Shown here in pieces: positions 6,550 to 46,471 of a stretch of 64,000 bases of DNA. Both the position numbers and the translations under genes were made by a program. Below the pieces are notes generated by a model. The model did not search any database. It was given only the letters and a program-made list of their open reading frames with translations, and was not told the DNA's origin. How positions within the stretch are numbered: position 1 is the stretch's first letter; every line of letters begins with the position of its first letter. The stretch lies in the IMG/VR virus record IMGVR_UViG_3300028862_000012, positions 124,001 to 188,000 of that record, one strand, 5' to 3'.

Positions 6550-8454
6550 ATGGAAGAATATGTACAAGAGTTAATTGAAAACATAGTTACTCGTCATAAT
6601 GAAGTACTTGATTTTTTGATGAATTGTAAAGACAGCTATTACAATGATGAGCCTGTTATTTCAGATAGCTTGTTTGATGAATTGGAAAATGCGTTTAAAA
6701 GAGTATTTCCTAAAGATGAATATTTTACTATTGTAGGAATATCTGCAAAAGGTGAAAAGGTAGAACATAAAATTCCTATGCTTAGTTGTGATAAAGGAAA
6801 GACAGTAGAAGATGTTATTAAGTGGAGGAACAAAATAGGCTATAATGACACTTTAATTTGTATGGGAAAAGGTGATGGATTATCAGGAGATATTGAGTAC
6901 GAGAATGGTGAAATTGTTTGTATTAGTACTCGTGGTAATGGTAAATTTGGCGAAAACAAAACTTGGTTGAAAGACTATTTGAATATTCCTAAGTCAATTA
7001 AGTATACTGCTACAGATGGATTTACTGGAGAAGTACGTGGAGAAATTCATTTAAAGAAATCTACAAAGATGGAAACAAATAATCGCCCCTTACGAAACGT
7101 TGCTGGTGGATTGGTTAATCGCAAAGATGATAAAACAGATTGTGAACATTTGCGATTTGTAGCTTATCAGCTATATAAAGATGATCCTAATGATTATTTT
7201 AGTAATGACTTAGCTGAACTGCAAGATATGGGTTTTGAGGTAATTTGGAATACAGAAATGTGTGCAGATAAAGATATAACTAATATCAGAGAAACATATT
7301 TGTCTACATTACGAAATCAGTTTGATTATGAAACAGATGGATTAGTATTTCAAGTTAATGATAAAACTTTGTATAACGCTATTGATAGTAAGTATGAAAT
7401 TTCTCACCACCATTATTATAATTTTGCATTGAAACCGCCAAGTGAGAGTAAAGAAACTCCTTGTACTGGTAAAACATGGGGTGTTGTGCGTTCAGGTGAT
7501 ATAGTTCCTGTTGGTTTATTTAAGCCCGTAATATTAGGAGGGCGACAGGTTAAGCAAGCATTATTGGATAACTATAGCAACGTGGTAAATCTACATATAT
7601 GTAAAGATGATATTATACTTGTGTCCTTGCGGAATGATGTAATTCCTCATGTAGAAGAAGTAGTTACTCACATTGGAACAGACTTAGATATCCCTACTTA
7701 TTGTCCTAGTTGTAGCTCTGCGTTAAGTATTATTACAAAAAGTAAAAATACAAAATCAAAGAAGCCTGTTGTTCAATACTTGCATTGTAACAATATAAGT
7801 TGCCCTGATAAAAATATTAAACAGATTACTCATTGGTGTACTGTTTTTGAATTTGATGGAGTAAGTGAATCAACCATCAGAACATTATATAATGCTAAGT
7901 TGATTTATGAAATCAAAGACTTGTATACCTTAAAAGATGCCTATGATACCCTTATAAGTATTGATGGATTTGGAAAAAAGAAAATAGATAATTTGTTAAA
8001 TCAGATTGAAAGTACAAAGTCTATCAGTATTGAAAAGTTTGTAAAAGCACTAGGTATTGAATCAGTTGGTGAACACGTTGTTAAAAACTTAGGTATAAAA
8101 TCGCTTAATGATTTTTGGAACTTTAATAACTTTGAGTATGTTACCGGTCAAAACTTAATTGCTTATCGAGATAGTAATAAAGAAGTAATAGAACATTTAC
8201 TTAAATTTGTTAGTATAAAGGAGTTAGCTATGACTACAGAAGTTAAAGGCATAGTAGCAATGACTGGCAAGGGTGCAAAAACCCGCAGTGAACTTATTGA
8301 AGATATTAAAAAAATGGGATATACTTTCAGTGACGGAGTTACTAAAGAAACAACTATTCTTGTATGTGAAAATGTGGATGGAAATTCATCGAAATTAATG
8401 TCAGCGAGAAAGAAAGGAATTACTTTAATGAGCTATGAGGAGTTTTTTAAATGA
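6550..8454 (+). CDS. ligA: NAD-dependent DNA ligase
   Basis: YY..EPVISD..FD, PMLS, KGDGLS (motif I), STRGNG, EVRGE, RNVAGG, ETDGLV, Zn finger CPSC, C-terminal BRCT. Confidence 0.95.
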   Translation: MEEYVQELIENIVTRHNEVLDFLMNCKDSYYNDEPVISDSLFDELENAFKRVFPKDEYFTIVGISAKGEKVEHKIPMLSCDKGKTVEDVIKWRNKIGYNDTLICMGKGDGLSGDIEYENGEIVCISTRGNGKFGENKTWLKDYLNIPKSIKYTATDGFTGEVRGEIHLKKSTKMETNNRPLRNVAGGLVNRKDDKTDCEHLRFVAYQLYKDDPNDYFSNDLAELQDMGFEVIWNTEMCADKDITNIRETYLSTLRNQFDYETDGLVFQVNDKTLYNAIDSKYEISHHHYYNFALKPPSESKETPCTGKTWGVVRSGDIVPVGLFKPVILGGRQVKQALLDNYSNVVNLHICKDDIILVSLRNDVIPHVEEVVTHIGTDLDIPTYCPSCSSALSIITKSKNTKSKKPVVQYLHCNNISCPDKNIKQITHWCTVFEFDGVSESTIRTLYNAKLIYEIKDLYTLKDAYDTLISIDGFGKKKIDNLLNQIESTKSISIEKFVKALGIESVGEHVVKNLGIKSLNDFWNFNNFEYVTGQNLIAYRDSNKEVIEHLLKFVSIKELAMTTEVKGIVAMTGKGAKTRSELIEDIKKMGYTFSDGVTKETTILVCENVDGNSSKLMSARKKGITLMSYEEFFK

Positions 8455-8794: not shown

Positions 8795-9320
8795 ATGGCA
8801 ACATATAAAACAGAAATAATATTAAATAAAGAACAACAATTACTATATTATAAATCTATAGGAACTTGTAGATTCGTTGCTAACTTATATAAAGATAAAA
8901 TTGAACAAGAATATAAAGATACTAAGAAGTTTGTAACTGCTTATACTTTTTCTAAATATTTAAATAACATATATTTAGATATACATCCAGAAATGATTTG
9001 GATAAAAAATGTTTCAAGTAAAGCAATAAAGCAAGTCATTATTAATATGGAAACAGCTTATAAAAGATTTTTTAATAAAAAAGGTAAATATCCTAAGTTT
9101 AAAAATCGACATACTAATAATTGTAATTATTAGTATGTTAGATCAGATAAAAATTGCGAAATAAAATGTTATCGTAATAAAATTAAAGTTCCTTGTTTTG
9201 GATATGTTTATTTTAAAGAATATGGTTATGTACCAAACAGTAAATATGATAGAATTACCAGTGGTAGTATTAGTGTTAAAGCAAATAGATTTTTTATATC
9301 TGTAAATACAGAAAAAGCAA
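8795..9320 (+). pseudogene. tnpB: truncated IS200/IS605 TnpB remnant
   Basis: GTCRFVAN, WIKNVSSKAIKQ, AYKRFF..KGKYPKFK; after in-frame TAG 9131-9133 continues KIKVPCFGYVYFKEYGYVP..SGSISVKANRFFISV; no RuvC motifs follow. Confidence 0.8.
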
Positions 9321-9693: not shown

Positions 9694-10205
9694 ATGTTTA
9701 GACCTCAGAGATATATGCAATTTCCAATAATTAGAAAAAGTATTGCTGAAGAGACTTGTGATACTTCAATAGATATAAGTATTTTAACTAAAGCAGAACA
9801 TTATGATAATATAATATTCATGAAAGATAAGAACGATATTGATTATGTAGCAAGATATGGTTCTTCTGATCTTGATTTACTATTGGTTGAACTTATCTAT
9901 ATGAAGATTATTAGACTCATGAATAAATGGGATAAAATAAATAGGAAGTAGCTATGAAATTTAGAATTATGAAATATGATAATAAGTATTGTGTTGAATA
10001 TAAAGAGCTTTTATTTTGGCATAATGTTATGTGGTTTCGTTGTGGCTGGACTATGTTTTCTGAAAGTTTATACTGTGAAGAAGATTGGGTAGATGGAATA
10101 TATTCAGAGCAAGTTGCTAAACAGTGTTTAGAAAATTTTAAGAAATATCTAAATAAATATTATTATAAGCATATTACTAAAGTTGAAACAGTATATGAAG
10201 AGTAA
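9694..10205 (+). other. two small hypothetical genes (9694-9951, 9954-10205)
   Basis: ORF track, RBS present. Confidence 0.55.
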
Positions 10206-11178
10206 TATATTATTTGATGAATACTTTTCAATGTTTGTTACTAATATACAGCGTAAATATTTAACTCATTATCAGGATCATCTATATCACCCCGAAAGCA
10301 CAGTTTTTTCGCATAGTAGATTAGTAGCACTGCTTTTACCTAATACACCTACTATGCAAATGTGTGCTTTGTTACATGATATAGGAAAGCTTAGTTGTAC
10401 TCAAGTTCATGTGAAACATAATACCTTGCGTATTCAAAATATAGGTCATGCAGAGATTAGTAATAATTGTATTGAACCACTCCGTAAGTATTTATTTAAT
10501 GAAATAAAAGATATTGATTGGGAGTGTGTGCATCAAGTAACATATTATCATATGCGCATGCATGATTATAATGATAATAAAATAAAAAAATCTGAAAAGA
10601 GGAAAGCTATGGAAGAGTTAAAGTATTTTAAAGAATTATCTATGTTTAGCACTGCTGATAAAAATGGAGTAGGCAGTAGTGAGTCTATGCTTCCCTATGT
10701 AGTAGTAACTGTTGGTATGAGCGGTAGCGGTAAATCTACGTGGCGCAAAAGTTTTATTACAGAAATGACAGAGGGTAAAACTCCTTTTATTGCTATTTGT
10801 CCTGATGACTTGCGCAAAGAGCTTACAGGAGATATTAGTAATCAGACTAAAAATAATGAAGTATGGGATAAAGCCTTTTCAATACTTGACTATTATATTT
10901 GTAACAAGCAGAATGTAGTGTTTGATAGTACCTGTACAAACCTTGATACTATGAAGCGTATTTTACGTCATTGTCAAAGTGATACAAAGCATAAAGCAAT
11001 AGTAATTTTTAAGATATTTAATGTAGATATTGATACTTGCAAATGTAGAGTTAATGATGATATACTGCATGGTGTAGATAGATCAAAAGTACCTATGGAA
11101 GTAATTGACAGACAATATGAAGGTTATAAAAAAGTAGTTGATTGGATTAAATCAAATGATAAGTTGATAATGGAGTAA
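10183..11178 (+). CDS. HD-domain phosphoesterase fused to P-loop polynucleotide kinase (HD-Pnk-like)
   Basis: HPE..VFSH, ALLHDIGK, GHAEIS, HM, AD..G (HD domain); VGMSGSGKSTW, CPDDLRKELTG, VVFDST (kinase). Confidence 0.85.
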   Translation: MKQYMKSNILFDEYFSMFVTNIQRKYLTHYQDHLYHPESTVFSHSRLVALLLPNTPTMQMCALLHDIGKLSCTQVHVKHNTLRIQNIGHAEISNNCIEPLRKYLFNEIKDIDWECVHQVTYYHMRMHDYNDNKIKKSEKRKAMEELKYFKELSMFSTADKNGVGSSESMLPYVVVTVGMSGSGKSTWRKSFITEMTEGKTPFIAICPDDLRKELTGDISNQTKNNEVWDKAFSILDYYICNKQNVVFDSTCTNLDTMKRILRHCQSDTKHKAIVIFKIFNVDIDTCKCRVNDDILHGVDRSKVPMEVIDRQYEGYKKVVDWIKSNDKLIME

Positions 11179-11180: not shown

Positions 11181-14057
11181 ATGAAATATACTGATGATGA
11201 GTGTTTAGAGTGGTGTAATACTCTTTTGAAAGAATTTGGTGATAAGCAAATTTCAGGATTTAATTTTGATTATAAAATTTATGGGGTTGCTTTAAAATTA
11301 AAGGAGAAGCTTGAAGAAAAAATAGTCCATGCAGATAGTTGCATCTTTTATCCTTCTACAGACGGAATGTTTGTAAAAAAAGGATCATCTAATATAGAAC
11401 ATATTTGTGATCTTACTAAAAATGATATAATTGAAGTATCTGAAAATGGAAAAACTTGGATCAAAGCTGATATTTATAAAAACAATTTTAATTATAAGTT
11501 TTATTATCAGATACTAGTGTATTCTTGTTTTACACAGCTTTATATTAAAACAAATAAAGATATTAATGTTAGGATTAGAAAAATTAATTATGGTAATAAA
11601 GTAAGCAGAGAATATTACTATCCTAGTGAATCTGGACTTTGTATAAAAGAAGTATATGAACGTGTTTGTCAAACACTTCCAATTATGTATGTAAAATTGA
11701 ATACAGCAATTATACCTGAATATAGACATAGGTGTTCCGAAAATTGGTATCCTATAGATACAAATTTTGAATTTGAAATATACTCTAATCATATAAATGT
11801 TTGGGGTTTGCCAAAAGGTAGTTTTGTAAGAATTAGATATGTAGAAAATGGAAATGAATTAGAAAATAAAAAAGTTATTACTATAAAGGAGTTTTTTGAA
11901 TCATGATAACTTTATTAGAAAAGCGATTAATAGCTTTATCTCAGCTTGGTATCACTATTCAACATGAAAATGGTCATAGATGGATATTAGCAATGGGGAC
12001 AGACTATTTTGATTTTAATAAAGAATGTGAAATACAGAAAGTATATCTTTGTAAAGTGTACAGTGGAATAAACTGTGCTTTAGATAAAGTAGATGAAGTA
12101 TTGAAATACACTAATAAAATATCATTAATAGATGTTTACAATTCTTTAGTACTTCAATATGATTGCGAGAGCGAAGACTATATTGTTTCTGAGGGTGAAA
12201 ATTTAGAATGATGAAATGCGATATACTTTTCTTTTCAGATGAGTTTGGCTTCATTGACGATCAGATTTGGTTTCATCATATGCTAGAAATCAATAAATTT
12301 GATCCAACATCTATAACTTACATAACGGAATTTCCAACTCAAGATGAAATCTTTGGAAAAGATTTAGTATTTATAGATTTTGGTGGAATTCCAAAAGGTG
12401 AAAGTTATTATTCATTACTAAATAGAGTAGAAAATTTAATTGAGTTCAATCATGATAAACAATTTGTATTTGCACTAACTATGCCAGAGTGGTTTTACAA
12501 TAGTGAAACATTGTTTAATTTTGATAATGTAATTTCATTCGATAAAAGTGTTTATGAAAATTATAACAAAGCATTTGATTTATTCAGATAAGGAAATAAA
12601 ATGAGCAGTATAATGATACCTCCATCAAGAAAATATTATTTAACTTATGAAGAAATGGGAAAGTTAAATACTAAACGATTACTTGCTTATAAGAAAAAGT
12701 ATTTAACAAACATGCATTGCCATAATCGATCCCATAAGTGTGATGGAAAAGATTGTAGCACTTGTAGAGATTATCCAGAATTACAAGAATTACAAATTGC
12801 TTATAAAAATATTCGAGATATATTATCAACAAGAGAGCATATAAAATGAACGAAGATAAACAAGAAATGAAATGTCCTAAGTGTAATTCTGATATGAAGG
12901 AATATGTAACTTGTTTTAGATGTAGGAATAAAGATTGTAATTTTATTTATGTTAAATATTTTCAAATAAAGGAAGATAAAGAAAATGAAAAGTAGATTAA
13001 AACTCTACAATAGACTACGTGCAAGTTATAAGTTTGTTTTTATCTGTAAAGACTTAAACAGAATTGGTTTTGCTACAAGCTTAGATCAATGTAAAGGTCG
13101 ATATACTGGTCATGAAAGCAGTGTAGTGCAGGTATCAAATTTTAGAAAATTATTATTTATTATTTTTGGGAGATAATATGGAAGATAAAGAAGTTATTAC
13201 CTTTGAACAGTTTATAGAATCTGAAATAAATCCTATCCGCAAGCAAGTAGGAATGTGCAAAATAAGTGCAGAGGATATAGAAAAATGTAAGGATATACTT
13301 AAAAGTTTTAATACTAAAAGTATTCCTTTATACAATCATGGTATAATTACTAATTGACAAATATTTTAATTTATTATAGGATTAGTAAAATGAAACAAGT
13401 ACTAAAGATATATTTGAATACTGGCTATAAATGTTTAATTAGCTATAATTTTCCAATTAAGTATTGTGATTATACCTTTTGGTTTAACTCATATAATATA
13501 GAAAAAATAGAAAAAGTATTGGATAACGTAGAAGTGAATAAAGCAGAAGAGTATAAGGACAATTTGTCTTTTGAGGGACTAACTTACGCTCAAGACATGA
13601 TTCGCATAAAAGGCGAATTAAAAAATTACTTAAAATATCATGATCCAATTGTCTTAAAAAGATTTAGCTGTGGTAGTATGAGCGTAAGCGCAGAATACAT
13701 AGATGTTCCAGAAGAAACAGATTTTGAATAAGGAGAGTATAGATGAATCTTAAAAAGATTGTTATTACAATTAAGGAAATTGGATTGGTAGGTGGCATCC
13801 AGTTTGATAATCCAGAGGTTCAAAAGCAAATTGATAATTCATTGATTCAGAAAATGGCTAAGAATGCAGTAGCTGATCAGTTGGCTACCTTTGAAGCAAA
13901 GCAGAAACTTGTAGAGTATGAGCGGACATGGATTGATATTGACATGCGGAAGGCAGTTATTGGTTATATTAATTCTGCAAGTGTTAACAAGATTCCTATT
14001 TTCCCTGCGGTAACAGGATCAAACACTGCTTTTGATATTTCAAAATACACCAAGTAA
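11181..14057 (+). other. run of small hypothetical phage genes
   Basis: about eight co-oriented, tightly packed ORFs (11181-11906, 11903-12211, 12208-12591, 12601-12849, 12985-13176, 13166-13357, 13354-13731, 13743-14057). Confidence 0.6.
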
Positions 14058-14070
14058 AATAATTTAAAAA

Positions 14071-14108
14071 AGTATAAGTCAGACAATTAGATTTATCTGA
14101 TTTATACT
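14071..14108. terminator. 13-bp hairpin between 13743-14057 gene and Hen1-ligase gene
   Basis: AGTATAAGTCAGA (14071-14083) pairs with TCTGATTTATACT (14096-14108); A-run on the left, no U-run on the right. Confidence 0.45.
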
Positions 14109-14121
14109 AAAGGAAGATAAT

Positions 14122-16623
14122 ATGTTTTTAATACTGAAAGACAAAACAGATGATAATAAGTTTAGCTATCTACTTTGCAAGAATCCTGCAAATACTTATG
14201 ATAGAGATACAGTAAAAGGAAAGTATATAGATAACTTCATTTATCAGATAACTTGTAATGCAGATAGTAAAAAGATGTTATCTACTTTAAAAGATCGTAA
14301 TGAAGAAAGTTATGTAAGTTATCAGTATGAAGGTGTAACTCCTATAAACTTAAATAATATATTTGGTGCTTGTTTACGATCTGCATTAACTATGAACTAT
14401 CCTGACAAGGATATCACTGATATAGCAAGTAAACCTCGTGATCTTGAATGTATTATTGGCCCCTTTATTTGTAATAAGAAACAGTACATTAACACGTTAA
14501 ATTCTTTTAATTTAAGTGTATCTGTACAGGAAGAGAAAAGTGTAGCAACCAGCTTTAAAATAAATAGTAATTTAGATACCTTGAGTTCTTTTTTACAGAA
14601 AATATTTATTCTATCGATGTACTTTACTTTTAAATATAATTTGTTTCCTGTTCAAATGTCTCAGATTGAAAAGTATATTGCTATGAGTAAATCATGGTTT
14701 GAAAAGAATGAGTTTAGTAAATATATTATTAGAATTTTTTCTAATAATAGAAAAGATATAGAAAAAAAGATGTGTGATAATTTAATTACTGATACTGAAG
14801 ATAATCAAGAAGTAAAAGATCAGCTCTATATTGATTATATGACTTTACATCAGGTACGCCATAATTTTATTACAAAGACTATTTCTGAACTTGTTGACGA
14901 TAAGGAGTTTACAACTATTGTAGACTATGGTTGTGCAAACGGAAAACTTAGTCTTAAATTAAATGATGAGTTAAAAAAACTGGATAAGAAGTTTGAAATC
15001 TATAGTTATGATGCAAATGACAAAGCAAAAGAAAAACTTGAACGGGTAAAGCATGTACATTTTTATCAGATGAACTTACTTGTCCCTAATTTTAATATTA
15101 TTCCTATTAATATTGATATACTGATTTTGTCTGAAATCATAGAACACTTTGATGCATCAGATCGTCAGTTTATCTTATTTAAGATTGTTGAAGTATTGAA
15201 TCCAAAGATAATTATACTTACTACACCAAACGGAGAGTATAATAAAATACTTGGTGTTCCTGATGGTGAAATGCGTGAAAAGTCTCATAAGATAGAGTTT
15301 ATACAAAGTCAATATAAGAGTGAAATACGGGATTATTTTGTTGCTAATAATTATGAAGCACTTGATTATATAATTAATGAAAATAAAGAAATTGAATTTA
15401 CAGAAGATGAAAACTTAACAGGTGCCACTTTTATTACTGGATTTAATAATAAGGACTGGAACAGGAAACTATCCAGTAGAAGTTCAGATGCTTATGCAAG
15501 TTACTATCTGCCAATTAGTGATTATAGTATTGCTCCTGCTGAATTTGCTAATGGATATAGTGCTAAGTCATTTATGTTTAATAAAAATATTTTCTATATG
15601 GCTCCTACTGTTCCACCTGTAGAATATGATAGAGTGTATTCAGATTATTTGGAACATCCTATGAGTGCTTTTCAGTACTTTCAAGATAGAGGAATAAATA
15701 CTATTGTAGGTGAAAATAAGTATATGGGTTCACGCGCTCATGTATTATTGTTTAAGACTATAGATATAGCTCATCAGCATGGTTTTAATAAATGTATCAG
15801 TATTATTACTCGTAATGGGAATGAGTTCTTTTTCAAGGATGAAGAAAAACATATAGAAGATGAGTTTTATAACAGTATAGAATTAAAATATGATGTAACT
15901 GTGCTTGATTGTGAAATGATGCCGTGGAAACTTAAAGCAAGTAATTTAATTGATACAAAGTTTCTAGGTGTTGGTGAAGCATCTGTAATGAATAGACAGT
16001 ATTGCCGTGATTTAAGTTTAGCTAACTCCCTTGAGTTTATTAAAGCACTAAATCCCTATATTCAAGATAGTGAGCCTTATTGTAGAATATTTGGAATACT
16101 TGCACTTGGCACAGTTAACGGTAGAAATACTGAATGGATAATGGGAACAAGTATTGATAATATACGAAAACAATATATGATTGGAGAAATTTGTGGTACA
16201 AGCACTAAGTTTCTACCAGTAGAATATTCTGTAATTGAATTAAACGAAAGTGATTCTATTGATAAAGAAGTAGACTACTGGAAGCATTATACAGAAAATG
16301 GTGGTGAAGGTAGAGTGTATAAGCCTGTATATCCACGCAACTATACCTCTAATGGGTATATGATTCAGCCAATGTTGAAGGTTCGAGGTCGCCCGTACTT
16401 ACGAATTATTTATTCACAAGATTATTTGGAACCATCCAATTTTGCAATAGTATGTAATCGAAGTATTAAAAAGAAACGCATACAGGCTATTCAAGAAACA
16501 GAGCTAAGTGATATAATATTGAAGTCATTTCTTAATAAGCGAGATGGAATAACTAGAAAATTAGTAGCAGGTTTTATTGGAACAGAAAATGTTAATTTTG
16601 GAAATGTTGATAAAACATTATAA
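14122..16623 (+). CDS. Hen1 (N-domain + 2'-O-methyltransferase) fused to bacterial Pnkp-type RNA ligase domain
   Basis: FSYLLCKNP (Hen1 N-term), VDYGCANG, EIIEHF, TTPNGEYN, REKSHKIEF (Hen1 MTase); YMAPTVPP, YLEHP, GENKYMGSR, LDCEMMPW, GGEGRVYKP, QPMLKVRGRPYLRIIY (Pnkp ligase). Confidence 0.88.
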   Translation: MFLILKDKTDDNKFSYLLCKNPANTYDRDTVKGKYIDNFIYQITCNADSKKMLSTLKDRNEESYVSYQYEGVTPINLNNIFGACLRSALTMNYPDKDITDIASKPRDLECIIGPFICNKKQYINTLNSFNLSVSVQEEKSVATSFKINSNLDTLSSFLQKIFILSMYFTFKYNLFPVQMSQIEKYIAMSKSWFEKNEFSKYIIRIFSNNRKDIEKKMCDNLITDTEDNQEVKDQLYIDYMTLHQVRHNFITKTISELVDDKEFTTIVDYGCANGKLSLKLNDELKKLDKKFEIYSYDANDKAKEKLERVKHVHFYQMNLLVPNFNIIPINIDILILSEIIEHFDASDRQFILFKIVEVLNPKIIILTTPNGEYNKILGVPDGEMREKSHKIEFIQSQYKSEIRDYFVANNYEALDYIINENKEIEFTEDENLTGATFITGFNNKDWNRKLSSRSSDAYASYYLPISDYSIAPAEFANGYSAKSFMFNKNIFYMAPTVPPVEYDRVYSDYLEHPMSAFQYFQDRGINTIVGENKYMGSRAHVLLFKTIDIAHQHGFNKCISIITRNGNEFFFKDEEKHIEDEFYNSIELKYDVTVLDCEMMPWKLKASNLIDTKFLGVGEASVMNRQYCRDLSLANSLEFIKALNPYIQDSEPYCRIFGILALGTVNGRNTEWIMGTSIDNIRKQYMIGEICGTSTKFLPVEYSVIELNESDSIDKEVDYWKHYTENGGEGRVYKPVYPRNYTSNGYMIQPMLKVRGRPYLRIIYSQDYLEPSNFAIVCNRSIKKKRIQAIQETELSDIILKSFLNKRDGITRKLVAGFIGTENVNFGNVDKTL

Positions 16624-16629
16624 GGAGAT

Positions 16630-18014
16630 ATGATGACCATAGAACAATTATATCAAGTATGTAAATCTGCTTATTATAGTGGAAAGGGCGATCTTGAAGT
16701 AGTGTTTGATACAGAAGCTATGTGCTTTGATTCGCATTTAGTTAATGTATCACGCGCAATATTACAAGATGACATGCCCGAAGAACTAGGAAAGTATTTA
16801 ATACTTAATTATGATATGCCTAAAGAGCTTGTAACATTTTTTAGACCTGATGAGAGACATAAAGCATGATAAGAAAACATACTATACAAGAGATAGCAAA
16901 TTATTTTAATGTGTTTATAACAAGCGGATATGATAAAACCTTTTTGCTATATCCAAAGAATCCTTTTAATAATAAAGGTCTTACTGAATTTAGAATGGAT
17001 AGCCTCTTTTTTAAAGAGGATATTAATGATTATGATAATAATATTCTATTAGCAGAACCTTGTTTACATGAGCATGATTTAGTTCTTTGCTGGAATGTTC
17101 AAGATGATTTGCCTAATATTCGCAAATATTTAAGAAAAGTAATTCAAGGTTCTAAAGAAGTTTTTGAAGTTTATAATAGTAGCATTAGCTACAAGGAATA
17201 TTATACCTGTTGCATTAGATATGAAGAAAAAATAGTAACTAATTTGGAAACAAAATGATATGCCCTAAATGTGGAAAGATTTTAAAAGAAAACTTACAGT
17301 ATTCAGATCCTTGTTTTGTAAAACTTACTTGTGAGGATAGCCTTTGTGGATGTTCTTTTACATTTGATTGTAACATTACAAATAATAAGCATGATATAAC
17401 TCAGATACTTATTAATAATGCTTATAATCTTTATTATAATAAAAAAGGAAGATGGAAAGATGAATTACGATCCTAACAGGGCTTATAACATGACTATTCA
17501 AAAAGTTAAATTAGTATTTGGTAGACATGAATATCGAAAGATAGTTGAAACAATTGTTGGTGGAAATTGTTTAGGTTTTACTGTCATAGAAGCCGCAATT
17601 GAAAACATATATGATGATCTTGAAACAGAAGATGATATTCCAAAAATTACTTTATCTACAGACGATGGAAATACATTAGAATTATCAGATGAAATGTTTG
17701 AAGGTAGTGACTGGTTGAAAAACTTAGTTATTTCTGCTACTATAATAAGTATAGAAAAGGAATAGAGTCTTATGATTAAAATGTTTAGAAAATCAGATTT
17801 AGTACAAAAGCAAACTTATAAACAATATCAAGTAACTTATTATGAAATATATACATCAACAGATGATAAGGAATTTGTTGCTGAAATTGTTTATATAAAA
17901 TCTAATTTTTCTAAAATAGAAGATATGAAATATATTTTAACAAAGTTTATGAAAGATATTTATATTGATATAAAATCAATAGAATATATTGAAGAATCAG
18001 TATTAAAGTTTTAA
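16630..18014 (+). other. run of small hypothetical genes
   Basis: five overlapping/abutting ORFs. Confidence 0.55.
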
Positions 18015-18024: not shown

Positions 18025-19152
18025 ATGGAATTACTTATATCTGAGTTTATTGAGCAGAATAATCATTGGAAAGACTGTATTACTCAAAAGCCCTATTGTA
18101 TAGAAGTAAAAGAGAAAAATGAATATACTCTATTAAAATATAATCAGATAGAAAGTAATTTTAATATTCCTTTGGTTCGTGAATGTAGAGGAATAATTCT
18201 TAGAGATAAAAAAATAGTATGTTTTCCCTTCAGAAAATTCGGAAATCAAGGAGAAGGATATGCTGATGATATTGATTGGGCAAGTGCTAAAGTTTTAGAA
18301 AAAGTAGACGGAAGTATTACTAAAATCTGGTTTGACATAACGTGGCATATATCAACTAATGGATGTATAGATGCTCATGATGCAGATATTCCAGACTGGG
18401 GTAGTGATTGCGAATATAAAAATTATTATGACCTTATTGAGTGTGCTTTAAAAAAGTATATTAAATTTGATAATCTAAGTGATTTAGATATAATTTTTAA
18501 GCATGTCTACACTTATATATTTGAAATGGTTTCGCCTTATACTAAAGTAGTAGTCCCTTATCCAGAAATAGATATTTATTTAATTGGAATTCGTAATAAT
18601 ATAACCTATGAAGAAGAATATATAAAGGAGCATGAATTAAGTACTATATTTAAAACACCTAAGTATTATGATATACATAGTTTAGATGACTGTATTGCTA
18701 TGACAAAAGAAATGCCTTTCAGTGAAGAAGGCTTTGTTGTAGTAGATAAGTATTTTCATAGAAATAAAATTAAGAGCATTGCGTATCTAAAAATATTTCG
18801 ATTGAAGGGTGAGGGTGTCGTTACTCCTAAGCGAATGCTTGAACTCATCCAGACTAATGAATCAGGAGAATTTTTAGCATACTTTCCTGAATATACAGAA
18901 ATGTATAATCTGTATAAATCTAAATATGATAAGTTAATTAAATATTTAGATGATTCCTTTGCTAACTTTTGGGAAATTTCTCATAGACTCAAAATAGTTC
19001 CCTGTCGGCAAAAACGTGCAGACCATATTAATAAGTACTATAAATGTCCTGACTTTATGTTTAAGCGATATGATAAAATGATAAAAGATGGATTAGAGTA
19101 TTGTTCAACTATGAGAATGGAAAACTTAGTTGAGTTATTGAAAAGTTTTTAA
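18025..19152 (+). CDS. T4 Rnl1-like RNA ligase
   Basis: LLKYNQ, ECRGIIL, PFRKFGN, EKVDGS (motif I), FEMVSP, EEGFVV (motif IV), KIKSIAY. Confidence 0.9.
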   Translation: MELLISEFIEQNNHWKDCITQKPYCIEVKEKNEYTLLKYNQIESNFNIPLVRECRGIILRDKKIVCFPFRKFGNQGEGYADDIDWASAKVLEKVDGSITKIWFDITWHISTNGCIDAHDADIPDWGSDCEYKNYYDLIECALKKYIKFDNLSDLDIIFKHVYTYIFEMVSPYTKVVVPYPEIDIYLIGIRNNITYEEEYIKEHELSTIFKTPKYYDIHSLDDCIAMTKEMPFSEEGFVVVDKYFHRNKIKSIAYLKIFRLKGEGVVTPKRMLELIQTNESGEFLAYFPEYTEMYNLYKSKYDKLIKYLDDSFANFWEISHRLKIVPCRQKRADHINKYYKCPDFMFKRYDKMIKDGLEYCSTMRMENLVELLKSF

Positions 19153-19841: not shown

Positions 19842-21047
19842 ATGAATAAAGCATATAAAGTTCGATTATATCCAAACATTACTCAAACTAAACTCATAAA
19901 TAAAACTTTTGGATGTACTCGATTTTTATATAATCAGATTTTGAATGAACATATTCAAGTATATGAAAAATATAAAAACGATAAAGAAGCTTTATTTAAT
20001 TATAAATACAAAACTGAAAAAGAGTACAAGCAGGAGTTTGAATGGCTAAAAGAAGTAAGCTCTCGCGCTTTACAACAGTCACATAGAGATTTACAAACAG
20101 CTTATACTAATTTCTATGCAGGATTAAAGAAATCTAAAAAAGTAGGTTTTCCAAAGTTTAAGTCAAAGCATAAATCACGCTTAAGTTATAGAGAGCCACA
20201 AGTAAGTGACTGTATTGAAATTAAAGATAATAAAATTAAATTACTAAAATTAGGCTATATAAAGTTTAGAGGATTAGATAAAAACTTCAGTGGCTGTATT
20301 AAATCAGTAATAGTTTATAAGTCTAAAACAAATAAATATTATGCTTCTATTTTAGTAGAAAAAACTATTGACAAAAAAGTTAGAATTAGTAATAATGATA
20401 TAGGAATTGATTTAGGATTAAAAGAGTTTGCTATATGCTCTAATGGAGAAATTATAAAAGGTATAAAACAAGATTTATATAATATTGAAAATACTACAAA
20501 AAGATTACATAAAAATTTAAGTAGAAAAAAGGCAGGATCAAAAAGATATGAAAAAGCGCGGCTAAAATTAGCAAAGAATTATGAATACAGTACTAATTAT
20601 TTAAATCATTTTCAGTGGAATTTAATAAAAAAGTTGTGTAGTGAAAATCAAACTATATCACTTGAAACATTGAAAGTAACTAATATGATTAAAAATAGAA
20701 AATTAAGTCATGCAATTCAGACTATTAGTTGGTCGAGCTTTGTTACAAAGTTAGAACAAAAAGCAAAAGAGTATAATACTGCTATTTATAGAGTTCCAAC
20801 TTTTTATGCAAGTTCTAAAATTTGTAGTCATTGCGGGAATAAAAAGCTAGAATTAAGTTTAGCAGAACGTGTTTATACGTGTGATGTTTGTGGATTTACT
20901 ATTGATAGAGACATTAACGCTTCTATTAATATTAAAAATTATAAGTCATTGGAGTACAATGATTACGAACGTGGAGAAAATGTAAGACCTGTAGAATTAT
21001 TTTATAATCCTGCTGGCTATTTCTATGAAGCGTTTAAGAGGAGTTAA
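19842..21047 (+). mobile_element. tnpB: IS200/IS605-family TnpB RNA-guided nuclease, no TnpA adjacent
   Basis: HTH_OrfB N-term KAYKVRLYP..FGCTRFLYN, RuvC-I IGIDLG, RuvC-II SLETL, Zn finger CSHC..CDVC, RuvC-III DRDINA; catalytic D/E/D intact. Confidence 0.93.
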
Positions 21048-21192: not shown

Positions 21193-22545
21193 ATGACAAA
21201 AATAGAATCATTCGCTGAATCTTTTCAAGCTGGTTCAGCGCCGAGAATTATAACAAAAATAGAGAGCATACTATCCAGAAGAGTTGGTAATGTAAATATA
21301 ACTAATATACCTATAGAGTATGATAATAAATATGGAAAGTTTCAAGGATTTTATGGGTTAGTTACTGGTTATGCTCAGTTATTTCGCCTTAATTTCTTAT
21401 TAAGTGGTAGTGACTCTATCTATAGTATAGATTTATACAATGGCGTATCTGATAGTCATCCTGCCATTACTGTTGATCTTAATGGTTTTAATATAGTTCA
21501 ATGTTTAGAAGCTATTACAGAAGAGCTTGAAAAAGGGTATGTAGATACAGAGTTAAATGAAGGATACAGATATTCAAATAAAGTAGTTGCACGATTTTTA
21601 GAATATACTTCTGATGATAGAAAAAATATGTTATTTAATACGTGGATAGATCAGGAAAATGATAGTATAGATTTATTACAGAATAAAAGATTAGCTGAAG
21701 TATATACAGTTTTCCTAAAGAAAGACAAAAGATATAATAGTGAAGTAAACTTTGCTAGTTTTCAATCAATGGCTAAAACTTATTTATTTGGAAGAGGGTT
21801 AACTAATCCATCATTTAGAAAGCGCAAGAAAGGTAGTGCAGAACGAGAAGTAGTTGATAAGGCAAAAGAAGATCAGCTTCGAGATATAGTTGATGGAATG
21901 GAAGTAACAAAGAAATTTGATTTTTTAGCTTCTGCGGTTGAAGCAGTTGTGGATAATAGAATACAATCATTACTTTGTTATGGAAGTCCCGGTAGTGGAA
22001 AATCTAAAACAGTAATGGATACCTTAGATAGTTTACATGTAAAACCACAGGTATTTAGTGGTGGTTTTAAAAATACTGATGAATTATTTAAAATTTTAAC
22101 GAAGTATAATGATAATGAAATTCTGTGCTTTGATGACTGCGATTCAGTTTTTAAGTCTATAGATAATAGGAACTTATTAAAATCAATTTTGCAGAATTCT
22201 GAAAAAAGAATAGTAACGTGGCGAGACAAAAAACTTGAGTTTACGAGTGGAGTAATCTTTATTTCTAATTTAGCTAAATTTGACTCGGCTATTGCCAGTC
22301 GATCAATGACTATTGAAATTACATTGACTAATGAACAAATGCTAGATCATATTGAAAATAATTTAAAAGAGTTTATGCCTGAAGTAGATATGAAAACAAA
22401 AAAAATGGCCTTAGATTTTTTAAAGGAAATTTCTTCAGGTGTAAAAACGGTGGATTTTCGAGAGCTTCAGAAGACAATTATATCAATTCAAATTCAGCCT
22501 AAAGGCTGGAAAGATTTTGCATTACTAATGCTTTCATCACAGTAG
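21193..22545 (+). CDS. AAA+ ATPase with unique N-terminal domain
   Basis: LLCYGSPGSGKS Walker A, ILCFDDCD Walker B, GVIFISN sensor, AIASRS arginine finger. Confidence 0.8.
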   Translation: MTKIESFAESFQAGSAPRIITKIESILSRRVGNVNITNIPIEYDNKYGKFQGFYGLVTGYAQLFRLNFLLSGSDSIYSIDLYNGVSDSHPAITVDLNGFNIVQCLEAITEELEKGYVDTELNEGYRYSNKVVARFLEYTSDDRKNMLFNTWIDQENDSIDLLQNKRLAEVYTVFLKKDKRYNSEVNFASFQSMAKTYLFGRGLTNPSFRKRKKGSAEREVVDKAKEDQLRDIVDGMEVTKKFDFLASAVEAVVDNRIQSLLCYGSPGSGKSKTVMDTLDSLHVKPQVFSGGFKNTDELFKILTKYNDNEILCFDDCDSVFKSIDNRNLLKSILQNSEKRIVTWRDKKLEFTSGVIFISNLAKFDSAIASRSMTIEITLTNEQMLDHIENNLKEFMPEVDMKTKKMALDFLKEISSGVKTVDFRELQKTIISIQIQPKGWKDFALLMLSSQ

Positions 22546-22551: not shown

Positions 22552-24783
22552 ATGATAAATTATAATAAATTAATAGACAAAGAAATAAATAAGTTATTAA
22601 ATGAATCAGTAGATTTTGAAAAATATAACAAAATTCTTTTAGAGCATACTTTAGAGTATTTTAAATATACTAAAATAAATAAGTATTCATTAGATGATTA
22701 TTTTAGAGGTGCTAGTGAACCTGATTGGTTTTGGCTATTTTTAAATAATTTACTTAAACGTTATAATGAAGATATCTATACCGAGTATAAAGGTAAAATG
22801 ATAGAAACCTCTGAACTTGTAGGAAACACTTTTACTAAGTATTTAAATAAATTAGCAGGATCACATTTTAGACAAGGACAATGGGATTATGAAAAAATAG
22901 AAGAGTGGTTAAAAGAAAAATTGCAATTAAAAGAATCTATATTAAAAGAACAAATAACAAAAGATTCTATTAAAGAGCTTCAAAAGGAAGCGCAATTATA
23001 TAATAAAGCTATAATGAAAATAGACTCCCCTTATGATTTATATGAAGTAAGTAAGTCTATGCAGGATTATAGTATTAAATTGCATGACTACTTAGAAAAT
23101 ACTTTGAATAGTAGAATTGAAAATACTGGATGGAAGGATGGTCATGGAAATGATTTTAGCTTTTATCCTTTTCAAGAGTTTTATCAGTATTTACGAGAAG
23201 TATTAGATCCCTATAAACTTTCTGGAATTAGAAGAGCATACGATGATTGGAATAAATATGATGAAAATATATGGGTAAATCATTATAGCTCTTTTGAAAA
23301 AAGAAGAAAATCTTTATACACAATGTTTTCTCAAAAGCTAAAAAAAGCATTTGATAACTTGCAAGATTGGCTGGATACCTTTACTAATGGCTATGCACCT
23401 AATCGTTCATCAGAAGAGCTTATAACTTATAATGGTTTTAAAATTAAAGTAACATCTGATGAAGCTCACTCCAATTTCTTAAACTCTAGAGGTAGTAATA
23501 GCTACTCTGTAGAAGATTTCAAAAAAGATTTAGATAACCTAGTACATGACTTAAAGTCAAAATCTATATCACCTGCTTTTTTAAAAAATGCGGTATTTGA
23601 ATTTAATAATACTATTTCTCTGGATATAGGTGGTGATTATCAAGCAACAGGAAATATTATTTCTGTATTACCTGATAAGAAAGAATCTTATACTACTTTA
23701 GTTCATGAAGTGGGTCATTGTTATGAAGTTACTGTTATTTCAAAACAAGCAAGAAGCGCATGGCAAGAGTTTTACAGTGATCCAAAGAATTTTGTATACA
23801 TATCTGATGAGACAAAAAATAATATAAAAAAAGAATTAGAGATAATTTGTAGTAGTAAAGAAATTAAAGATGGCTATGAAGAAAACAAATATAATCATAA
23901 TGGTTTATATAGTATTAAAAATAAGATACGCTTGCAGTTATTAGCTAAGTTTAATAAAAACTCCACTGAATATAAATTATTAACTACATTATTTAATGAT
24001 ATAAAAATAGAGGCAATTGATTATCTTCCTAGCAAGCCAGATGACATTGATTTTTTTATGAGCATATTAAATAACCATGAACTAGGTGGAGTATTATTTC
24101 AAGATCGAATAATACTTAATAATATGTCATTATATAGTGCAAAAAATGAGAAGGAAGCTTTTGCAGAAATGTTTATGTACTATGTTTTAGATTATCATAA
24201 ACAAAAAGATTTCTCTGTTGATTTTATACATTTTTTTAAGTCTATTATTGGCGTATCCTCAACAATTAATGAATCTGTAAATATTACTACTTGGTATCAC
24301 GGATCACCTGATAAAATAACTCATTGGTCTACAGAGTTTATGGGCATAGGTGATGATCAAGAAGGTGCAGGAATTTATTTTACTTCCAATTATGATGACG
24401 CAAGCGGTTATAGTAAAAATAAGGGCTATGTTTATGAAGTTGAATTACATACTACTAAATGGATGAGTACTAAAGCAAAGCCAAAAGTTATTGAGTTAAA
24501 AAAACTTATAGAATTAGCAGATGATTATGAAACCACTTTAGGAAACTGGGGTAATGAAGATCCAGCTAAGGATATGAGAGACTGCTTGAATGACTATCTA
24601 CAATACAATAAAACTATGTTTGAAGCAGTTAAATCAGTATGTAATGATTTTTATCGTTATGATAGTGCAGGTTATTGTAATGCAATAATGTATATTGGAT
24701 ACGGTGGTGTAATAGTTCCAAAAAACTTAGGCGTTTTTCATGCTATAGTTTGGAATCCTAAAATAATTAAAAATATTAGTTGA
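22552..24783 (+). CDS. polyvalent-type protein: zincin metallopeptidase + C-terminal ADP-ribosyltransferase-like domain
   Basis: TTLVHEVGH and YS..NEKEAFAEMF (zincin); WYHGS, GAGIYFTS, ASGY, GYVYEVEL (ART-like). Confidence 0.7.
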   Translation: MINYNKLIDKEINKLLNESVDFEKYNKILLEHTLEYFKYTKINKYSLDDYFRGASEPDWFWLFLNNLLKRYNEDIYTEYKGKMIETSELVGNTFTKYLNKLAGSHFRQGQWDYEKIEEWLKEKLQLKESILKEQITKDSIKELQKEAQLYNKAIMKIDSPYDLYEVSKSMQDYSIKLHDYLENTLNSRIENTGWKDGHGNDFSFYPFQEFYQYLREVLDPYKLSGIRRAYDDWNKYDENIWVNHYSSFEKRRKSLYTMFSQKLKKAFDNLQDWLDTFTNGYAPNRSSEELITYNGFKIKVTSDEAHSNFLNSRGSNSYSVEDFKKDLDNLVHDLKSKSISPAFLKNAVFEFNNTISLDIGGDYQATGNIISVLPDKKESYTTLVHEVGHCYEVTVISKQARSAWQEFYSDPKNFVYISDETKNNIKKELEIICSSKEIKDGYEENKYNHNGLYSIKNKIRLQLLAKFNKNSTEYKLLTTLFNDIKIEAIDYLPSKPDDIDFFMSILNNHELGGVLFQDRIILNNMSLYSAKNEKEAFAEMFMYYVLDYHKQKDFSVDFIHFFKSIIGVSSTINESVNITTWYHGSPDKITHWSTEFMGIGDDQEGAGIYFTSNYDDASGYSKNKGYVYEVELHTTKWMSTKAKPKVIELKKLIELADDYETTLGNWGNEDPAKDMRDCLNDYLQYNKTMFEAVKSVCNDFYRYDSAGYCNAIMYIGYGGVIVPKNLGVFHAIVWNPKIIKNIS

Positions 24784-28387: not shown

Positions 28388-29629
28388 ATGTTCGATAAGT
28401 TGCAACATGCTTATACACAATTAAACACATTAGCTCAAGGAAGTCCTGTAATTGCTGGTATAGTTAGTCTATACGGCTTGGGACTTCTTACTTATTTTTT
28501 AAAAGATATACCAAAAAAGTTTATTGGTTTTTTAGCAAAGCATTTAACTACACGAGTAGAAATTTCTAACATGAATGATTGTTTTCTTCATATATTAAAA
28601 CTATTTGAGAAAAACGATACTGTAAATAAAATAAGATGCATTAAGTTTTTTAATGGAAAATGGGGTAATGATCAAAGCATAACTAAAGGTATAGGAAAAG
28701 GTAAACATATAGTCTGGTTTAATCATGTGCCTATTAGTATTCAGCTTACAAAAACAGACACTACACAATCATCAGAAGAAAAACTTTGTATTGAACTAGT
28801 AAAACTAGGAAGAAGTCACAAACTTTTTGATAAACTTTTACAAGAAATGCAGTTACCAGAAGTATATGATGAAAAAATTATAGGTATATATGAGTTTGAT
28901 AGTAGCTGGAATAAGCTATTAAACATACCATCAAGAGATTTTAATACAATCTTTATTGAAGAAGATAAAAAGAAATTACTTATATCTTCTATTGAAGATT
29001 TTTTATCAAAAGAAAGCTGGTATTTAGAACGTGGTATTCCCTATCAGTTAGGCATAATGCTGTATGGTGAGCCGGGAACAGGCAAGACAAGTATTATAAA
29101 AGCATTGGCACATTATTTCAAACGAGATATTTATATACTGCCTGTATCAAGAATTTATAAATTAAGAGAATGTATTTCTACTTTGCCTAAAAATTGCTTT
29201 CTTGTTATAGAAGATATTGATAGTTGTCCTTCAGTTATAGAACGAGTAGAAGAAGAAAGTAATTTACCTAAATCAAATAAGGAATCAAGTATATTTGAAG
29301 AATATAAAAATATAGGATTAAGTGAAATACTAAACTCTATTGATGGTTTAGTTTCATTAAATGGTAGAATACTTATTTCTACTACAAATAGATATAATAA
29401 ATTGGATGATGCTTTTAAGCGTAAAGGTCGCATAGACTTAGCAGTTCATATCAGTTATGTCACTGTAGAAACATTTAAGAAGTTTCTTAAAGTATTTTAT
29501 TCAATCAATCAGCAAGAGCTAAATAAGTTTTCTATAGAAACAATTAATCCAGTTACAATAGCTGCATTGCAAAACGATTTCATGCAGGGCATAGGCTTAG
29601 AAGAAATTATTAAAAAATATTGCAATTAG
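28388..29629 (+). CDS. BCS1-like membrane-anchored AAA+ ATPase
   Basis: N-terminal TM segment, RDFNTIFI, WYLERGIPY..GIMLYGEPGTGKTS, LVIEDID, LSEILNSIDG, STTN, LDDAFKRKGRID. Confidence 0.8.
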   Translation: MFDKLQHAYTQLNTLAQGSPVIAGIVSLYGLGLLTYFLKDIPKKFIGFLAKHLTTRVEISNMNDCFLHILKLFEKNDTVNKIRCIKFFNGKWGNDQSITKGIGKGKHIVWFNHVPISIQLTKTDTTQSSEEKLCIELVKLGRSHKLFDKLLQEMQLPEVYDEKIIGIYEFDSSWNKLLNIPSRDFNTIFIEEDKKKLLISSIEDFLSKESWYLERGIPYQLGIMLYGEPGTGKTSIIKALAHYFKRDIYILPVSRIYKLRECISTLPKNCFLVIEDIDSCPSVIERVEEESNLPKSNKESSIFEEYKNIGLSEILNSIDGLVSLNGRILISTTNRYNKLDDAFKRKGRIDLAVHISYVTVETFKKFLKVFYSINQQELNKFSIETINPVTIAALQNDFMQGIGLEEIIKKYCN

Positions 29630-31070
29630 TTGTTGCTTTATTTAAAATATGGGTTTATGATACTATATGTTTATTTATAAAGGATTTTTCTATGATAGAT
29701 ACTGATCAATTACTTAATGCTACTTTAGTTTCTGCAATTTTAAGTTTTCCTTTTATTATTTATTTTATTGTAAAGCAAATAAAGCTTAGTAATTATAATA
29801 GGAAATGTAGGCAGGAGCATATAGCAAATATAGTTAATTACTTCTTTGATCTTATTCTTACTAAAGATAAGAAAACAGTGGATGGAAATAATCCGAATAC
29901 TATCAAATTCTTTTGGTGGGATTATAAACAAGCATATCATGATAAAGAAATTTTGAATTATTCCGTTGAAGATTACATAAATATATATCTTAGTCTCTTT
30001 ACGCAAAAAGAACCTATTCATATTTATCGTTCAAAACGAAAAAGAAATAAAATGGCAGAGCGCATGATAGGAAGAGAGATTATCTGGGAAGTTAAAACTG
30101 AAGACCCAGTAGAAGAGGATCTTGTTGTAAACGAAGGAAACTAATATGAATAGAGCTTTAGAAGATCTTGAAAATTGTATTGAAAATAGCAGTGCTTATG
30201 ATGTAGCTGTATTAAAAAATTTAGTTGAAAAAATAAAGAATACTTGCGTTACCGAAATTGATTTAGCTTATGAACTACAATTTGTTAAGGGAATGCCTAA
30301 TGCACATACAGCAGATTTATGTGCAGAGCTTATACTTAGTAAGTTTGAAGGACACATTATAAAAGATAGTGGTATATCAGAATTGTTTAAATAGGAAAGT
30401 ATATGACAAATGATGAAGTTCGAGAACTGTGGAAATATAGCAATTGTGATTATAACACAATGTTCGATAATATAGCTGTATTGCAAAATAATTTAACTAA
30501 AAAATTTGAAGAACATAACAAAATTAATGATCATAAATTATTTTTATCATCAAGATTTAATTATTATTTTACCGATAATACACGTATTATTTCTGATATG
30601 TATTTGTTTGTAAGCGGAACTTATTATATAGATCGTGAGTGCATTAGTTTTAATAAAGATGGTTTTATCGGCTTTGCTGGATGGGCAAGTTCAGAAAATA
30701 CTGCACCAATACTTGAAGCCTTTATAGAAACTTTATCTTTTATTACTAAACAAAGTATTGCAGAGTTACTAAATAGGGAATTAAACTAACATTCTTTAAA
30801 GAAGGTTATATGACAGTTGATAAAATTATTCAACAGGCTTTTAATCAAACAGCCACTAATTCTGATTTTGATGAAATAATGTGGCAACGTACTGCTTATC
30901 CTTTTGATGCTGTGACTGCAAAACAGATATATAAAGTAGCTAGTTCTGTGTATCGTGCAAAAACTAATCATATACCTTTATGTGAATTTTGTGAAAATAA
31001 AGCTACAGAAAATGGCTTGTGTTATATTCACAAAGATATATTTCCACTTAGTAAGTGTATCACTAATTGA
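29620..31070 (+). other. four hypothetical genes
   Basis: 29620-30144 (TM), 30146-30394, 30403-30789, 30810-31070. Confidence 0.55.
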
Positions 31071-31095
31071 CATTAGTAAAAATAAGTTTTATAAA
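31067..31095 (+). promoter_or_regulatory. sigma70-type promoter TTGACA-17-TATAAA
   Basis: sequence match 18 nt before ATG 31113. Confidence 0.7.
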
Positions 31096-31112
31096 AGATA
31101 TAAGGAAAAATT

Positions 31113-44015: not shown

Positions 44016-44064
44016 ATTATTTTAGTTTTTAACTATTATAGTATAAGTATTTTAAGGAGACCGT

Positions 44065-44298: not shown

Positions 44299-44311
44299 TT
44301 TAGAGGTAGTA

Positions 44312-46392: not shown

Positions 46393-46471
46393 AATTATTG
46401 TAATTGTGAAATATTTCACAGCAAAATAGCTATTTTCAGCTTAGTTGTATTTAATATTTTCATATTATTAG

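Follow-up and report, generated by a model that had tools for sequence, protein, structure and literature searches.

A jumbo-phage protein that joins a Hen1 activator, a Hen1 methyltransferase and a Pnkp-type RNA ligase in a single chain

The stretch of DNA described here (the window) comprises 64,000 nucleotides, bases 124001-188000 of the 223,865-bp virus record IMGVR_UViG_3300028862_000012 in IMG/VR, which CheckV rates as 91% complete. The carrier is a jumbo phage from peat with a genome of about 224 kb, and a peat metagenome is the only sequencing run that holds the locus in full. Nearly all genes of the window lie on the plus strand, and its phage genes for replication and nucleotide metabolism include a DnaB-like helicase, a DNA ligase dependent on nicotinamide adenine dinucleotide (NAD), a nicotinate phosphoribosyltransferase, ThyX, and a 5'-3' exonuclease. 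The gene of interest encodes a protein, P0001, in which both domains of Hen1 precede an RNA ligase of the Pnkp type (Table 1). Canonical Hen1 consists of a ligase-activating N-domain (Hen1-N) and a Mn-dependent 3'-terminal ribose 2'-O-methyltransferase. In the bacterial Pnkp/Hen1 system, the ligase seals only once Hen1 is bound to Pnkp, and repair is thereby coupled to methylation (PMC3675462, PMC4411300).

Table 1. Features of the fusion gene and its surroundings (window coordinates unless otherwise stated; HMM, hidden Markov model; ORF, open reading frame; aa, amino acids)
Feature	Position	Strand	Size, basis or remark
NAD-dependent DNA ligase (LigA type, with BRCT)	6550-8454	+	
Transposase fragment	8795-9133	+	112 aa; upstream of the repair cluster
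HD-Pnk-like end-healing enzyme: N-terminal HD phosphoesterase, C-terminal P-loop 5'-OH polynucleotide kinase	10183..11178	+	331 aa
ORF beside HD-Pnk	11181-11906	+	241 aa; starts 3 nt past the HD-Pnk stop
Shine-Dalgarno-like AAGGAAG	14110..14116	+	5 nt 5' of the fusion ATG; direct sequence reading
Fusion gene P0001	14122..16623	+	833 aa, ATG start; ORF list and translation
Hen1 N-terminal ligase-activating domain, aa 1-236	14122..14829	+	Family profile, fold, relatives
Hen1-type RNA 3'-terminal 2'-O-methyltransferase domain, aa 238-445	14833..15456	+	Profile, PDB, fold
RHxDH to RExSH change, residues 385-389	15274-15288	+	Motif alignment
Family-specific connector, methyltransferase to ligase, aa 446-487	15457..15582	+	Connector HMM, AlphaFold2 model
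Pnkp-type (Rnl4-like) ATP-dependent RNA ligase domain, aa 488-833	15583..16620	+	PF16542, 4e6n_A fold
Codon of Lys533, predicted adenylylated lysine of motif I KYMGSR	15718..15720	+	Alignment
T4 Rnl1-like RNA ligase	18025..19152	+	375 aa; RNA_lig_T4_1 E=5.4e-12; PHROG 562 E=5e-41; TIGR02308 E=2.2e-11
TnpB (IS605 OrfB/Cas12f-like), full length	19842-21047	+	401 aa; 700 bp downstream of the Rnl1-like ligase
AAA ATPase	21193-22545		450 aa
Protein with C-terminal ART-PolyVal ADP-ribosyltransferase domain	22552-24783	+	743 aa; domain E=2.3e-9
Nicotinate phosphoribosyltransferase	31866-33086	+	
GC-rich island	~42000-52000		GC fraction 0.35-0.48
Metallophosphoesterase in the island	45736-46392		218 aa
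PAPS-reductase-domain protein in the island	50338-51033		
CCA-adding/poly(A) polymerase family enzyme	record 207127-207504, outside the window		427 aa; PF01743 E=7.6e-28

The central and C-terminal domains of P0001 are recognized from the single sequence. Pfam PNKP_ligase (PF16542) matches from residue 488 to about 830 (E=1.7e-54), and several class-I methyltransferase models match weakly at residues 243-391. Among PDB chains, the ligase domain of C. thermocellum Pnkp (CthPnkp) is matched at E~3e-34 and the Hen1 methyltransferase domains 3jwh/3jwg at 6e-11. The NCBIfam model of bacterial Hen1 (TIGR04074) aligns residues 153-406 with profile positions 172-432 of 462 (E=1.2e-20), at a score of 73.5 bits that does not reach the curated equivalog value of 340 bits for stand-alone Hen1 of about 460 aa; the Pnkp model (TIGR04075, E=1.4e-47) is matched in its ligase portion only, at profile positions 482-628. 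The first 150 residues of P0001 alone gave no match, and Pfam Hen1_L (PF12623) was not reached. The N-terminal domain is assigned instead from the family profile, the relatives and the fold: a profile built from alignment A1 of 47 full-length relatives matches the Hen1-N structure 4dqz_A (also present in 4drf/4e6n; E=6e-9, positions 1-211 against 1-223), and 21 of the 47 relatives match Hen1_L singly. The same profile raises the match to the CthPnkp ligase to ~1e-76 and that to the Hen1 methyltransferase to ~1e-36.

The predicted fold gives the same layout. An AlphaFold2 model of the whole chain, made with alignment A1, has a mean predicted local distance difference test score (pLDDT) of 92.9, a predicted template modelling score (pTM) of 0.88, and no disordered segment. 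In structural alignments with VIA-align, residues 1-203 superpose on Hen1-N (Z 18.6, root-mean-square deviation 1.6), residues 241-445 on bacterial, plant, and human Hen1 methyltransferases (Z 20-21), and residues 458-833 on the CthPnkp ligase 4e6n_A (Z 41.3, deviation 2.1 over 363 residues); Foldseek agrees with this placement. The connector between methyltransferase and ligase is modelled as strands and helices (pLDDT 79-95), and its residues 458-487 superpose on CthPnkp 453-480. Because the pTM is 0.88 although the largest of the three domains makes up only 43% of the chain, the domains appear to hold a fixed mutual arrangement. No kinase and no metallophosphatase (Metallophos) match was found anywhere in the chain, and since the three domains and the connector leave no stretch unassigned, there is no room for either. 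P0001 is therefore Hen1-N, a Hen1 methyltransferase and a Pnkp-type ligase in one chain, without the Pnkp kinase and phosphatase. The sequence-only reading of the locus had proposed this domain order in a single 833-aa chain, had placed the ligase lysine in the motif ENKYMGSR and had noted the missing kinase and phosphatase domains; Pfam, NCBIfam, the family profile and the fold bear it out on each count.

The catalytic residues are largely those of the separate enzymes. ENKYMGSR occupies residues 531-538, and its KYMGSR aligns with KHMGSR of the CthPnkp ligase. Lys533 is invariant in all 47 aligned family members and, in the wider comparison, in 122 fusion, 74 Pnkp, and 16 stand-alone ligase domains. 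The remaining ligase positions (G536, R538, R564, E598, P601, W602, E729, G730, K734, K753, R755, Y764) are, like K533, kept as in the 74 canonical Pnkp ligase domains. In the methyltransferase, the S-adenosylmethionine (SAM) motif D268/G270/G274 and the metal-ligand set E338, E341, H342, and H389, together with R385 and E392, are invariant or nearly so across 124 fusions and 63 canonical Hen1 proteins, and the fusion hallmark set aligns with EVIEH and R-H-x-D-H-x-F-E of 3jwg/3jwh. In Hen1-N, K20, P22, Y64, and W192 are 94-100% common to the fusions and the 63 canonical Hen1 proteins.

P0001 belongs to a populated family, a point that the sequence-only reading had left out. An exhaustive search of 1.84 billion sequence representatives gave 125 matches below 1e-30, and domain HMMs found the activator-methyltransferase-ligase architecture in 124 of 237 fetched proteins. 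Full-length collinear homologues are 27-59% identical to P0001. An HMM of the connector region (residues 405-490) matches 113 fusions and 13 partial, truncated, or stand-alone-ligase relatives, with no match among canonical Pnkp and Hen1 proteins; the connector is conserved and family-specific, and the fusion is old and stable. In a tree of ligase domains, 115 of the 122 fusion ligases form one clade with 10 stand-alone and 8 partial ligases (support 0.91), and none of the 74 Pnkp ligases, a sample biased toward the best matches to the query, falls inside it. As a separate observation, an 894-aa protein from a eukaryotic transcriptome assembly (P0052, eukprot) is collinear with the family over its full length, and the IMG/VR contigs L016 and L017, the latter named as a giant-virus metagenome-assembled genome (MAG), contain weak matches to the ligase part.

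The contexts of the fusion genes are mostly phage, with terminase, rIIB, and DNA polymerase neighbours and IMG/VR contigs of up to 245 kb. Among the best 80 loci from the 185,579 species genomes of GTDB, canonical separate Hen1 and Pnkp genes occur in 66 and the fusion in three, one in a Candidatus Falkowbacteria MAG and two in Obscuribacterales MAGs. Public names of fusion proteins are generic ("methyltransferase domain-containing protein", or a ubiquinone methylase label). PHROGs holds no family for the fusion. The search of 50,697 GenBank phage records gave only a match to a Pnkp ligase, in Xanthomonas phage XacN1, and no full-length counterpart; the fold clusters of the AlphaFold DB also contain none. 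Among the ESM Atlas clusters returned (at least 50 members each), there are separate phage Hen1 and phage Pnkp clusters and no fusion cluster. No description of the fusion was found in the literature searched, and an earlier mention, for example by Burroughs & Aravind (NAR 2016), is possible. The family is thus recurrent but unnamed: with at least 124 clusters sharing the collinear architecture, it is no isolated case, and it is not an architecture that is commonly annotated either.

Two further RNA repair genes flank the fusion gene. In the product of the upstream gene, the kinase part is recognized by AAA_33 (E=2.4e-13) and by the PHROG polynucleotide kinase profile (E=8e-15), and its only PDB match is Pnkp1 (4xrp_A). 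The N-terminal domain is weak by score alone (HD E=0.009, HDIG E=3.6e-4), and the motifs H..HD..GH..H..H..D and GSGKS/T are kept in four HD-Pnk orthologues that lie beside a fusion gene. The 241-aa ORF that begins directly after HD-Pnk matches nothing in Pfam, PHROGs, or NCBIfam and has no counterpart next to HD-Pnk in the relatives. The downstream gene encodes the Rnl1-like ligase. A full-length TnpB gene follows it and a transposase fragment precedes the repair cluster; TnpB genes also lie near the fusion in the relatives L004/L007 and L009.

HD-Pnk is 0-3 kb from the fusion gene in the window and in the contigs L029, L030, and L008, that is, in three of the four closest relatives with usable context, and Rnl1 is likewise nearby in the window and in two of those (L030 and L008). 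In L030, whose fusion is 56% identical to P0001, the fusion, HD-Pnk, and Rnl1 genes stand back to back with a metallophosphoesterase upstream. The order in L008 (44% identity) is fusion, Rnl1, HD-Pnk. In L029 (54% identity), HD-Pnk lies 1 kb upstream of the fusion, and no Rnl1 was found within the 16 kb examined. Since gene order differs between the window and these three contigs, the proximity argues for a functional linkage. Fusions in more distant contigs have other RNA-repair genes beside them (RtcB with archease, RlaP, Thg1, a CCA-adding enzyme, metallophosphoesterases), and PHROG scans of the unannotated genes next to them revealed no hidden kinase-phosphatase. A weak AAA_33 match in the complete phage genome G003, considered as a hidden kinase, proved to be a deoxynucleoside monophosphate (dNMP) kinase.

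Elsewhere on the record, the phage carries a cluster of 10 tRNA genes on the minus strand (record positions 28682-34269, outside the window) and an enzyme of the CCA-adding/poly(A) polymerase family. One of the ARAGORN tRNA calls (33931-34001 of the record) has a four-base anticodon (aatt) and is either frameshift-suppressor-like or a miscall. Within the window, Rfam and tRNA scans found nothing, and a scan for sigma-70 promoters and terminators was uninformative in such AT-rich DNA (79 found vs 70 expected).

Several other features of the window are recorded here in their own right. The ART-PolyVal protein is preceded by the AAA ATPase. The guanine-plus-cytosine (GC) content is 29% for the whole record and about 26-31% across the bins of the window outside a single GC-richer island. 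ORFs in the island start with GTG or TTG and mostly lack a Pfam match; exceptions are a protein with a 3'-phosphoadenosine-5'-phosphosulfate (PAPS) reductase domain and a metallophosphoesterase. The island may be acquired DNA or a DNA-modification module. Together, the LigA-type ligase and the nicotinate phosphoribosyltransferase point to a phage that helps to maintain the NAD it needs for ligation.

Among characterised repair systems, the fusion stands closest to bacterial Pnkp/Hen1. It shares with that system the same three folds (Z 18.6, ~20, and 41), the E-x-x-E-H...H metal set, KxMGSR, and motifs III, IV, and V. It differs in being one polypeptide instead of two, in lacking the kinase and the metallophosphatase, in placing the ligase after the methyltransferase by way of a unique connector, in its shorter insertion module, and in its separate ligase clade. 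The homodimer interface of the kinase is given as the main basis of the canonical (Pnkp)2(Hen1)2 tetramer (PMC3675462), and the fusion lacks that domain. The heterohexamer Pnkp1-Rnl-Hen1 of Capnocytophaga gingivalis (4XRP/4XRU) resembles the fusion in that its ligase is uncoupled from the kinase-phosphatase chain, and its Hen1-N contacts the ligase insertion domain (PMC4411300). Unlike the fusion, it consists of three separate proteins, and its healing enzyme is a kinase-metallophosphatase, whereas that of the window is an HD-kinase. Both halves of the fusion profile match Pnkp/Hen1 better than they match Pnkp1-Rnl-Hen1, the ligase at E 1e-76 vs 5e-30 and the methyltransferase at 1e-36 vs 1e-17. 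The N-domain of Pnkp1-Rnl-Hen1 is of the PF22032 (Hen1_N) type, which is matched by 3 of the 47 fusions, as against 21 for PF12623, and its Rnl is a weaker match to the fusion ligase (Z 31, 19% identity).

Two other systems resemble the surroundings of the fusion. Like the window, phage T4 encodes heal-and-seal enzymes, Pnkp and Rnl1, and a homologue of its Rnl1 is present in the window. Repair by this T4 pair counters a host anticodon nuclease. T4 differs in having no methyltransferase, so that its repaired tRNA can be cut again, and its Pnkp is a kinase-HAD phosphatase instead of an HD-kinase. By its description (PMC6097658), the HD-Pnk cluster of Runella slithyformis is like the window in pairing an HD phosphoesterase and a C-terminal 5'-OH kinase with a neighbouring ATP-dependent ligase. 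The ligase there is of another, uncharacterised kind: it adenylylates, yet none of the substrates tried with it was sealed (Munir & Shuman 2017, as related in PMC6097658). In the same description, Tpt1 and a methyltransferase-HIT protein stand in place of Hen1.

The reading preferred here takes the fusion for a "seal and immunise" enzyme of phages, the core of Pnkp/Hen1 with the kinase and phosphatase shed. Its probability is put at roughly 0.6. Cut tRNA is the probable substrate of the family, which would reseal it and protect the joint from a second cut by marking it. HD-Pnk, encoded by a separate gene, would remove the 3' phosphate and phosphorylate the 5' end. The methyltransferase of the fusion would place a 2'-O-methyl group on the 3'-terminal nucleoside. 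The ends would be sealed by the ligase domain, which would carry the adenylyl group on Lys533 and be kept competent by Hen1-N, to which it is covalently joined. A transesterifying nuclease should then be unable to cleave the methylated joint. Ends healed by the same HD-Pnk could also be sealed without a mark, in the style of T4, by the Rnl1-like ligase, which would work in parallel. While the analysis shows the domains, the catalytic residues, the fold, the family, and the gene linkage, the enzymatic steps, the activation in cis, and a role in counter-defence are inferred from characterised bacterial systems. Self-activation of the ligase in cis, as the sequence-only reading had it, is plausible on indirect grounds: Hen1-N is retained in all 124 fetched fusions, with the K20/P22/Y64/W192 signature of canonical Hen1, and the whole-chain pTM of 0.88 implies a fixed packing of the domains.

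Certain observations weigh against this reading; they concern expression, the healing partner, the activator, and the methyltransferase motif. A search of sequencing runs at the locus yielded no RNA data showing expression of the fusion gene. As to the healing partner, HD-Pnk is absent from the more distant fusion contigs, including the complete 187-kb phage genome G003, and among the close relatives P0005 (45% identity) is an exception, with no HD-Pnk on its 78-kb fragment. HD-Pnk might also serve Rnl1 rather than the fusion. An unlikely alternative holds that HD-Pnk and the Rnl1-like ligase are the genuine T4-like heal-and-seal pair, and that the fusion works separately from HD-Pnk; its substrates might be ends that enzymes of the host or others of the phage have healed, or RNAs that already carry 3'-OH and 5'-PO4 ends. 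The HD-Pnk and Rnl1 genes are direct neighbours in L030, where their translation is apparently coupled, and they adjoin each other in L008 too, and the distant fusions manage without HD-Pnk beside metallophosphoesterases, RlaP, RtcB, or Thg1. Yet HD-Pnk is close to the fusion in L029, where the stretch examined holds no Rnl1; all three genes are found together in the window, L030, and L008; and a 3'-OH/5'-PO4 ligase and a Hen1 methyltransferase both require healed ends. The sequence-only reading had the fusion rely on HD-Pnk. The enzyme itself is real, and the linkage in the window and three close relatives favours that reliance, but it is no family-wide rule: since the distant fusions lack HD-Pnk and have other neighbours, the healing partner appears to vary across the family. 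The Rnl1-like ligase had been overlooked.

The activator raises a second alternative. In both solved systems, Hen1-N grips the insertion module of the ligase to unblock its site (PMC4411300, PMC3675462). The corresponding segment is about 23 aa shorter in the fusions (median 57 aa in 122 fusions vs 80 aa in 74 Pnkp proteins). The modelled full-length ligase fits the Hen1-N-bound form 4e6n_A (Z 41.3, 363 residues aligned) better than the free forms (Z 34, ~315 aligned), which had been taken as a hint of activation in cis. This argument is withdrawn because the ligase modelled alone with the same alignment shows the same preference (Z 42.7 vs 33-34), that is, it persists without the N-domain; the better fit to 4E6N/4DRF probably reflects the longer, better-ordered chains there. 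In a two-chain prediction of the ligase (470-833) with Hen1-N (1-236), the latter, supplied without an alignment, reached a pLDDT of 29, which is evidence neither way. The trimmed module and the open, bound-like shape of the ligase modelled alone would also suit a constitutively active ligase, with Hen1-N kept for RNA binding, as a scaffold for 3'-end hand-over, or for activation in trans within a dimer. This is rather improbable: the two insertion helices (residues 603-646) are kept in the AlphaFold2 model, the signature residues of Hen1-N are conserved, and it is exactly this module that Hen1-N contacts in the solved systems.

The third point concerns the methyltransferase. The RHxDH motif beside the metal ligand H389 reads RExSH in P0001 (E386, S388); Asp388, present in 109 of 124 fusions and all 63 canonical Hen1 proteins, is absent. 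P0001 and its nearest relatives share the form RE-x-(S/T/G/H)-H, with similar changes in P0002-P0007. These substitutions (H386E and D388S) could alter methyltransferase activity in the subclade, and the enzyme might there be degenerate, leaving a protein that works as an RNA ligase alone and keeps Hen1 as a structural remnant. Such a loss is very unlikely, given that the four metal ligands, R385, E392, and the SAM motif are intact and invariant. Moreover, the altered motif is itself conserved: an acidic residue stands at position 386 in P0001-P0006, seemingly moved there from 388. Because RExSH is kept within the subclade, a tolerated or compensated change under selection is suggested.

That the long ORF is an artefact, either an assembly chimera, a possibility raised by the sequence-only reading, or a frameshift that merged neighbouring hen1 and ligase genes, found no support and can be set aside as refuted for practical purposes: a 56,648-bp Logan contig (depth 13) from a peat run, which may be the source sample of the window and is then an independent assembly but not an independent sample, spans 13500-17500 with zero differences; two further runs (freshwater sediment and peat) contain identical 151-nt pieces inside the fusion gene; another IMG/VR contig, 103.5 kb long, matches the entire repair cluster at 100% identity; and at least 124 collinear homologues share the fusion-specific connector.

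The seal-and-immunise reading has a bearing on how ligation is coupled to methylation. A natural chain that contains the activator, the methyltransferase, and the ligase alone identifies these three as the functional core, and on this reading the healing steps can be left to HD-Pnk, an enzyme unrelated to it. The Pnkp-Hen1 holoenzyme was resistant to crystallisation as of 2015 (PMC4411300). The fusion is a simpler object for structural and kinetic work on the passage of the 3' end from methyltransferase to ligase, and it may find use as a single-protein reagent for joining RNA and labelling the junction. It represents no new principle, but a clean natural experiment on this coupling. A more tentative proposal, possible rather than probable, is that the fusion serves phage counter-defence as a minimal, self-contained enzyme that docks onto the healing enzyme of its phage, whichever that is (HD-Pnk in the window), and that gives lasting resistance, by a 2'-O-methyl at the junction, to tRNAs cut by host anticodon nucleases or collateral RNases; because the insertion module is trimmed and the activator permanently attached, the Hen1-dependence checkpoint would be hard-wired "on". 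Large phages are the main carriers of the family, whose neighbours include tRNA genes, CCA-adding enzymes, Rnl1, RtcB, RlaP, and Thg1, and RNA repair with immunisation is therefore likely to be a phage answer to host defences that cut RNA.

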